A DNA stretch of 63,906 bases, filler included, from Dugesia japonica (lineage: Eukaryota): assembly GCA_001938525.1 (NCBI GenBank). It is 6 parts of 6 records of this genome, joined end to end, with 100 filler letters (N's around TTAATTAATTAA, not from the genome) between each part and the next. Parts side by side here need not be neighbours in the genome. Positions count along the whole stretch, not along the records: positions 12,833 to 25,974 come from MQRL01525679.1; 5 more parts are not named here. One strand, written 5' to 3'. The position numbers and the translations under genes were made by a program. The notes beneath the pieces were generated by a model that worked only from the letters and a program-made list of their open reading frames with translations, ran no database searches and was not told where the DNA came from. How positions within the stretch are numbered: position 1 is the stretch's first letter; every line of letters begins with the position of its first letter. Positions 13,600-15,609 of this stretch are shown here, one piece after another.

Positions 13600-14978
13600 A
13601 TGGCCTATTCAAAACTTCGAGAAAATAAATTGCTGCTGACTAGATACCTGAACCTGCCAACATCAGATGACCAAGTGCAAGTAATGTATATTTGGATAGA
13701 CGGAACTGGAGAAAATCTTCGAAGTAAAACTAGGACACTTGATTTTGTACCAGTGAAACCAAAAGGTCAAACTTTTCAATCTTTTTCAATTTGAATTTGT
13801 AATTTTATAGATGTTCCAATTTGGAATTTTGATGGTAGTAGTACAGGCCAGGCAGAAGGCAGTAATTCTGATATCTATCTGCATCCAGTTGCATTATTTA
13901 GCGATCCATTCCGTGGAAAAGAAAATAAAATGGTATTGTGTGAAACATATACATATGATCAAACACCACACGGTATCATTGATTAATTTAGATTAATTAA
14001 TCAAAATTTTAACAGAGAGTAATTTGAGGCATTCGTGTGAAGAAGCAATGAAAGCCGCTGAAGATTATCATCCATGGTTTGGAATAGAACAAGAATATAC
14101 ATTACTTGATATTGATTTGTATCCATTTTCATGGCCAAAATTGGGCTTCCCTGGAGCACAGGGTATGTTAAAATATTTTTCATTGGAAAATAAGTTGTAT
14201 TTGACTTTTCTAGGACCGTATTATTGTGGTGTTGGATGCAACAAAGTGTTTGGTAGAGATATCATTGAAGCTCATTATAAAGCATGCCTTTTTGCTGGAA
14301 TTAAGATAGCGGGTACAAATGCAGAAGTTATGCCAGCTCAAGTATTGATTTCAAAGATTATTTAAAAAGTAAAATCTATTGTTTATTTCTAAATAAAAGT
14401 GGGAATTTCAAATCGGTCCTTGTGAAGGAATTAATGTTAGTGACCATCTATGGATGGCCAGATATCTTCTTCATAGAGTTGCTGAAGATTTTGGAGTTGT
14501 TGTCAGTTTTGATCCAAAACCGATAGCAGGAGACTGGAATGGAGCTGGTGCACACACGAATTATTCGACCATTCAGATGAGATCTCCTGGAGGAATCAAG
14601 TAAGTTAATAAAGCTTGAAATAATTTTTATTATATTCTACAGATACATAGAAGAAGCGATAGAGAAAATGTCAAAAAGACATCATGAGCATATTGAAGCT
14701 TATGATCCTCATAAAGGAGAGGATAATAGACGCCGTTTAACAGGACGACATGAAACTAGTACTATAGATGATTTTTCATCAGGTTTTTATATTATAAATT
14801 CAGTAGCATTTTAAAATTTTATTTAAAAGGAGTTGCAAATCGAGGAGCATCAATTAGAATTCCACGCCAAGTTTCTGAAGATGGATGTGGTTATTTAGAA
14901 GATAGACGACCTTCTTCTAACTGTGATCCATACTCTGTTACGGAACGAATTGTTCGCACAACAATTTTAGAAGATTAA
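13600..14978 (+). CDS. GLUL: Glutamine synthetase type II, 7 exons, 363 aa
   Basis: Exons 13600-13765, 13811-13972, 14016-14162, 14214-14341, 14400-14599, 14643-14782, 14830-14978, all GT-AG and phase-consistent (1092 nt). Motifs [59 protein letters not shown] and EDRRP are intact. Confidence 0.97.
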
Positions 14979-15165
14979 ACCATTTGTTTGAACCTTTTAT
15001 CATATATTCATGAAACTTCAATTTTTATATTATCATAATATTTTGTGTGTCTAATAAATAATTTCATAAATTATTATTAATTAATAATTAAATTTAAATT
15101 AAATAATTAAAACTAATTAAATTAATTAAAGTTTAAAATAATGAAAACTATTTCTTAAAGTAGTC

Positions 15166-15207
<42 letters not shown>

Positions 15208-15256
15208 TATTACATTACTAAAAAATGATAATTTTAAATAGAAAATAAAAACTTAC

Positions 15257-15609
15257 AATTGATAACCAAATACTAGTCTTGATAATTTGATTCTTTTCAT
15301 CCTTTAATTAAATTTAAATGAAACAAATAATTAAATAAATAAACAAATACTAACAACATCGATTATTTGAGTTAAGGTAGTTCCAAAAAGAACTTCTAAT
15401 GTTTCGCTTTCATTTTTCACAGGCCTTTCCAATGGATTATGAGCGTCATGTCTATTTGGATTCAATAAATCTCCAAGCAATCTTTTTTCATGAGATCCAC
15501 CTATTAAAAAAATTGGTCATTGTAAAAATATCTAAATAAATTAATTACCAATTACGTATCGAACAATTATACTACTGATTAAAATACGCAACCAGATGAA
15601 ATAAATCAT
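15257..15609 (-). CDS. Nicotinic acetylcholine receptor subunit, alpha7-like, exons 1-3 (partial)
   Basis: Exons 15609-15549 (signal peptide MIYFIWLRILISSIIVRYVI), 15500-15355 (GSHEKRLLGDLLNPNRHDAHNPLERPVKNESETLEVLFGTTLTQIIDV) and 15301-15257 (DEKNQIIKTSIWLSI, 45 nt). Introns are 48 and 53 nt, then a GTAAGT donor. Not shown in the ORF track. Confidence 0.92.

Follow-up and report, generated by a model that had tools for sequence, protein, structure and literature searches.

The locus described here raises the question of whether a glutamine synthetase (GS) gene of Dugesia japonica sits in antisense orientation within an intron of a nicotinic-type receptor gene, or simply lies beside the first exons of a receptor that goes no further. 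The window, that is, the whole stretch of DNA analysed, is 63,906 nt long, filler included, and consists of six parts of assembly GCA_001938525.1; both genes lie in the part at positions 12833-25974 (MQRL01525679.1). The GC content of this AT-rich piece is about 27% overall and 12-35% in its 500-nt segments, and short assembly gaps interrupt it. The GS gene (+ strand) and the receptor exons (- strand) are arranged tail-to-tail within one gap-free stretch, 13167-16494. Near the end of that stretch, positions 16304-16490 showed a word depth of about 4200-9700 in the X2 DNA contigs, compared with about 13 elsewhere; this segment adjoins a 52-N gap (16495-16546) and belongs to a very high-copy repeat. 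Farther along the + strand, a degraded retrotransposon pol fragment was observed at 21154-22614, with ORFs that matched RVT_1 (E=3.8e-6) and RT_RNaseH_2 (E=4.3e-14) and were broken across frames. The + strand also carries, at 24101-25382, a divergent beta-tubulin gene that matched Tubulin (E=4e-33) and Tubulin_C (E=6e-18), is split into three or more coding segments and departs from the tubulin signature, GGGTGSGMGT. Rfam and tRNA scans of the piece gave no matches.

The + strand carries a type II GS gene of seven exons, with a coding sequence at 13600-14978 and 363 codons. When the exon coordinates were joined locally for a count of length and stops, the coding exons totalled 1092 nt, with zero internal stops and a terminal TAA. 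Exon 1 (13600-13765) begins with the ATG at 13600 and holds 55 codons plus 1 nt, and exon 2 (13811-13972) encodes the beta-grasp domain, matching Pfam Gln-synt_N (PF03951; E=4.7e-11, 42.6 bits, above the 33.4-bit cut-off). Exons 3 (14016-14162) and 4 (14214-14341) are followed by exon 5 (14400-14599), the core of the catalytic domain, which matched Pfam Gln-synt_C (PF00120; E=1.9e-7, 30.9 bits, above the 24-bit cut-off) and eukaryotic type II GS chains in the PDB (E=2e-31 over 65 aligned residues). Exon 6 occupies 14643-14782, and exon 7 (14830-14978) ends with the stop codon TAA at 14976-14978. The six introns are 43-58 nt long with GT..AG ends, and all of them were backed by X7 RNA contigs and by reads, 195-364 in X21 and 642-745 in X22. 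The joint 13765|13811 was crossed by 330 and 745 reads, respectively; 13972|14016 and 14162|14214 were crossed by hundreds of reads each, and the joints 14341|14400, 14599|14643 and 14782|14830 bound the remaining exons.

The ends of the GS transcript were also well marked. An X7 RNA contig starts at 13353, where the template-switch oligo forms its loose end, and read depth climbs from 13388, which places the transcript start at about 13353-13390 and gives an unspliced 5' UTR at 13353-13599. Polyadenylation, which closes the 3' UTR (14979-15076), falls at about 15070-15076: A runs form the loose ends of X7 contigs at 15070, 15073 and 15076, and RNA depth is 0 past 15115. The transcript is 1.7 kb long. 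These results indicated a complete and strongly expressed gene for a cytosolic type II glutamine synthetase. The enzyme shares the beta-grasp and catalytic domains of the decameric, cytosolic eukaryotic type II enzymes (PDB 2ojw/2qc8, 7cpr) in a protein of 363 aa and differs from them in no notable way, being an ordinary, highly expressed enzyme. Planarian GS is expressed in glia, parenchyma and intestine (PMC5055395), a pattern that would fit the high read depth if the locus is that gene. Across the GS transcript (13390-15012), about 30 fixed differences separate X21 and X22 from the window. The window and X21/X22 therefore represent lineages that have clearly diverged, although they are filed as one species. 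In the 166 nt of GS exon 1, seven third-position changes separate them.

On the opposite strand, 279 nt past the GS stop codon, three short exons of a Cys-loop (nicotinic-type) receptor occupy 15609-15257. The coding part of exon 1 (15549-15609, - strand) begins with the ATG at 15609 and encodes a hydrophobic, signal-peptide-like leader of 20 aa. Exon 2 (15355-15500, - strand; 146 nt), encoding GGSHEKRLLGDLLNPNRHDAHNPLERPVKNES...QIIDV, is the start of the ligand-binding domain and was recognized by Pfam, by alpha7 structures in the PDB, by flatworm relatives and in RNA. Exon 3 (15257-15301, - strand) is 45 nt long and encodes DEKNQIIKTSIWLSI; trematode orthologues have an exon 3 of 45 nt, and the exon is present in an X7 RNA contig. 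The boundaries of the three exons are canonical (AG/GT), introns 1 and 2 are 48 and 53 nt long, and together the exons form an open frame of 252 nt, or 84 codons. The receptor transcript begins at about 15635-15660. The first-pass annotation had placed the end of exon 3 at 15257, with a GTAAGT donor directed toward GS, and both coordinates were confirmed, the donor lying at 15256-15251 on the - strand. It had also remarked that the ORF track misses the receptor, which is true because each receptor exon is under 50 aa.

We then considered what kind of receptor these exons represent. Exon 2 aligned with positions 1-40 of the 216 of Pfam Neur_chan_LBD (PF02931; E=6.5e-4) at 19.6 bits against a 26-bit cut-off; a score below the gathering threshold is expected because the query has only 48 aa, and only the first fifth of the ligand-binding domain is present in the window. 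A HMMER scan of exon 2 against 1.84 billion protein representatives returned 276 matches with E<=1e-3, the best at 3.6e-15, and the matches to flatworm receptor N-termini ranged from 3.6e-15 to 1e-9. Judged by these scores, the receptor match of exon 2 exceeds chance. The traceable matches that carry a 5-residue insert (R.DAHNP.ERP) were flatworm proteins from Dicrocoelium, Schistosoma curassoni and Trichobilharzia, and a further search yielded full-length proteins from trematodes that bear the names acr-16 or alpha-7, measure 530-671 aa and have both Pfam domains. The window receptor shares the unusual N-terminal signature RLL..LF...R.DAHNP.ERP, 5 residues longer than in other nAChRs, with flatworm ACR-16/alpha7-like subunits such as the Clonorchis sinensis "acetylcholine receptor subunit alpha-type acr-16" (P0152) and those of Dicrocoelium, Schistosoma, Trichobilharzia and Paragonimus. 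Compared with four trematode proteins, it was 45-52% identical over exon 2 and 60-67% over exon 3. The nearest database protein was P0001 (UniParc, 87 aa), which is 81% identical in exon 2 and identical at 15/15 residues in exon 3, has a signal peptide unrelated to that of the window receptor, and ends with VSIF after exon 3, which looks like read-through of the same donor. A Sarcoptes alpha7-like locus (L003) gave the best long match and was rejected as an orthologue, as it lacks the flatworm 5-residue insert; no GS was found near it. Two short contigs (L001 and L002) held an exon-2-like ORF only.

The first-pass annotation had called the receptor alpha7-like. The description holds insofar as the best solved-structure matches of the 48-aa exon 2 were alpha7 chains: in vertebrate neuronal nAChR alpha7 (PDB 7koo, 7eki and others), exon 2 matched NPLERPV.N.S..L.V.F...L.QI.DV over a 29-aa stretch only, at E=2e-3, and the DEKNQ...W exon comes next, as in the exon structure of CHRNA7. 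The description does not extend to the alpha class itself. The vicinal Cys-Cys pair of loop C defines nAChR alpha subunits, and the exon that would carry this pair is missing here. The pair is also absent from the four full-length relatives that were checked (P0136, P0152, P0154 and P0155), which would thus be non-alpha by the classical rule, despite their database names; the alpha assignment of the window receptor is therefore doubtful. In this flatworm alpha7/acr-16-like subfamily, the 5-residue insert (R.DAHNP) precedes the ERP motif, and a CC pair is lacking throughout. The 13-residue Cys loop and the four membrane helices (PF02932) are likewise encoded by exons absent from the piece.

The question turns on exon 4, which in trematodes encodes KWTDYHFKWD...WKPDLLLYN. 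The - strand between 15260 and 12833, translated in three frames, revealed no W.PD/E and no W.D..L.W motif. When eleven receptor proteins, eight of them near-full-length flatworm sequences, were compared with 12833-25974 on both strands by tblastn, only exons 2 and 3 were recovered. Both scans bore out what the first-pass annotation had reported, namely that exon 4 is absent from the 278 bp between exon 3 and the GS stop codon (14976-14978; the spacer, 14979-15256, is exactly 278 bp) and from the interval between GS and the scaffold edge at 12833, which lies 767 nt upstream of the GS start codon. Considered as a nested pair, the locus shows an upstream host exon with a donor at 15257, and no downstream host exon was found within 12833-15256. 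Two readings of this result had been proposed, GS nested in receptor intron 3 or a truncated receptor. In the first, the receptor gene would be intact and continue past the left edge of the scaffold at 12833, and its intron 3 would exceed 2.4 kb and hold the whole GS gene in antisense orientation. In the second, the exons would belong to a truncated 5' copy that arose by partial duplication or by decay of a gene; its exons 1-3 would still be transcribed and spliced, and GS would simply be the next gene. The lack of exon 4 anywhere in the piece counts for the truncated copy and against the nested gene. The databases pointed the same way: P0001, an 87-aa model, likewise ends after exon 3, apparently by read-through of that donor. 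When P0001 was used for a word search, only P0001 itself came back. The N-terminal region of P0136, used in this way, yielded nine relatives (eight from trematodes), none with the exons of the window. Neither the nearest HMMER representative nor the two word searches gave a protein with the window receptor's N-terminus that extends past exon 3.

To place the exon structure, we compared the orthologous loci of Clonorchis (L004), Trichobilharzia szidati (L005) and Paragonimus (L006), the full-length trematode orthologues with located loci being 561-670 aa long. The residue at which exon 2 ends is identical in the three loci and in the window receptor, and the exon 2/3/4 boundaries are common to the trematode orthologues and the window receptor as far as the latter is present. 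Clonorchis and Trichobilharzia have this 45-nt exon 3 as well; the annotated Paragonimus model starts within exon 3, at 10001, and exon 3 ends there at about 10087. Exon 4 follows an intron 3 of 4.1, 7.0 and 3.0 kb in Clonorchis, Trichobilharzia and Paragonimus, respectively. A long intron after exon 3 would fit the receptor family, though the trematode introns are all long, measuring kilobases where introns 1 and 2 of the window receptor measure 48 and 53 nt. Beside these two, an intron 3 of more than 2.4 kb would be an outlier, which argues against nesting. The first-pass annotation had proposed looking at GS/nAChR synteny in related animals. No GS-like sequence at E<=0.05 was found in the three trematode loci, including 10 kb flanks, so the pairing does not occur there and the GS-in-intron arrangement is not an old conserved feature.

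Transcription of the receptor was assessed from the RNA data. In the stranded run X22, the first mate fell on the - strand over GS and on the + strand over receptor exons 1-2, and receptor exons 1-2 are therefore transcribed from the - strand. Receptor depth was about 2-8 reads overall; in X22 the sense depth was about 3-8 over exons 1-2, with about 2 sense reads over exon 3. Such low expression would suit a truncated copy. The joint of intron 1 (15500|15549) was spliced in 7 stranded reads of X22 and in one X7 RNA contig. This contig measures 277 nt; exons 2 and 3 together with 87 nt of exon 1 would come to 278 nt. Its coverage is exactly 45 nt in the exon 3 bin and zero in intron 3, and it therefore stops at the donor with no read-through, a behaviour that argues against the truncated copy. 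A contig end at the donor would fit a branch between spliced and unspliced forms, and it falls short of proving a spliced exon 4. Mapping RNA-seq reads had been suggested as a way to find exon 4; it established that exons 1-2 are transcribed and that intron 1 is spliced. No joint or loose end at 15257 appeared among the RNA reads and contigs listed for the window, and no read or contig listed joins 15257 to another exon, which again weighs against nesting. Antisense reads over GS amounted to 0.2-6.6% of sense in the stranded run. In our own judgement, they could be within the range of strand leakage, and they were not counted as receptor pre-mRNA.

The substitutions between the window and the RNA lineage provided a view of constraint. 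All four listed substitutions in the receptor exons (15376, 15433, 15445 and 15577) are synonymous and at third positions, compared with 12 synonymous among the 17 substitutions in GS. The receptor exons thus appear to be under purifying selection. Taken together, the synonymous-only changes and the conservation with P0001 point to selection on the mature N-terminus, and such selection would make sense only with the rest of the receptor following. The same observations tell against the truncated copy: the mature part is conserved with P0001 and the signal peptide has wholly diverged. Nor is there damage to the start codon, the frame or any splice site. To our knowledge, a lone 84-aa piece of ligand-binding domain has no known function among Cys-loop receptors, which also counts against the truncated copy. 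One observation runs in the opposite direction. In X22, 4 of 6 reads (with 2 start positions only) carry an extra A after 15267 (+ strand), giving TTTT instead of TTT in the sense direction. The extra base would shift the frame of exon 3, and it is absent from the X7 RNA contig; either a frameshift allele carried by another strain or mere noise could account for it. This possible 1-nt insertion in another lineage favours a truncated or decaying copy and counts against an intact receptor. Weighing these points, we regard the truncated copy as unlikely.

A further explanation concerns the assembly itself. A real receptor and a real GS could have been misjoined through the repeats at 15079-15212, the true intron 3 being some other sequence. 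The spacer contains AT-rich 9/19-nt tandem repeats at 15079-15147, identified in the repeat analysis and found elsewhere in the genome as well, and a (TTA)15 microsatellite of 46 nt at 15167-15212, between GS and receptor exon 3. A second (TTA)n microsatellite, at 13052-13239 to the left of GS, contains a 50-N assembly gap, past which the scaffold continues for only 284 nt. GS is thus bracketed on both sides by (TTA)n microsatellites, the left one with an assembly gap, an arrangement that could favour a misjoin. Several X2 DNA contigs with different flanks converge at 15071-15136. In an independent DNA run, the GS-carrying contig fits the window up to 15155 and then no longer does, within AT-rich repeats, and the receptor exons have almost no DNA-contig depth; these results are in keeping with a misjoin and weigh against nesting. 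Odd back-joints were seen as well. An X2 DNA contig (depth 8.9) and an X7 RNA contig (depth 2.9) both link 15100 back to 13317, with an identical insert of 30 letters at the joint, and another X2 contig joins 15848 to 15081. These back-joints, which also count toward a misjoin, might be due to dispersed repeats rich in AT, or some genomes might carry a tandem or rearranged copy of GS. A tandem duplication of GS, as the joint between 15100 and 13317 might suggest, was not adopted, the depth of the GS contig (13.7) being that of single-copy sequence (11-13). Against a misjoin, the stretch 13167-16494 is continuous with no N, the (TTA)15 array of 46 nt is shorter than usual reads, and each of six DNA runs contains 71-90% of the words sampled from 13280-16400. 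We therefore consider a misjoin quite improbable, and leave a small share of the probability to explanations of other kinds.

The remaining reading is that of an intact receptor whose intron 3 runs off the scaffold with GS in antisense orientation inside it, and we hold this to be the probable one, with some reserve. The evidence leans toward nesting because of the - strand transcription with a spliced intron 1, the apparent purifying selection and the trematode-like intron positions; of the two readings proposed at first, nesting is thus the one favoured, with exon 4 itself never seen. We infer that exon 3 would splice to an exon beyond 12833, from which the nesting would follow. A functional meaning for the pairing is another matter. 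The first-pass annotation had supposed that overlapping transcription would link a neural receptor to a glutamate-recycling enzyme; with antisense reads at 0.2-6.6% of sense and no such pairing in trematodes, this link was not supported. If GS is nested antisense, heavy GS transcription in non-neuronal cells might hinder elongation or splicing of the receptor pre-mRNA, with the reverse in neurons and mutually exclusive expression as the outcome, a scheme that we rate as very unlikely. Since none of the three orthologous loci examined in trematodes shows the receptor and GS together, their pairing seems to be a coincidence.

If nesting is true, the locus would add one more host/nested pair of a common kind, and its value is mostly one of annotation. 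A gene predictor would end the receptor after exon 3, as P0001 appears to do, and the conserved 45-nt exon with its donor tells the annotator to seek the remaining receptor gene on another scaffold. Nested genes make up about 6% of genes in D. melanogaster, 2.1% in C. elegans and 0.5% in human, and a gene of opposite orientation inside a host intron is the most common form, mostly found in large introns (PMC3786989). The window differs from known host/nested pairs in that only the upstream host exon is visible, so that nesting is deduced from that side of the intron. It resembles them in having a compact gene downstream of the host donor and in the opposite orientation, and the GS-in-receptor arrangement, if true, would by this comparison be an ordinary host/nested pair.
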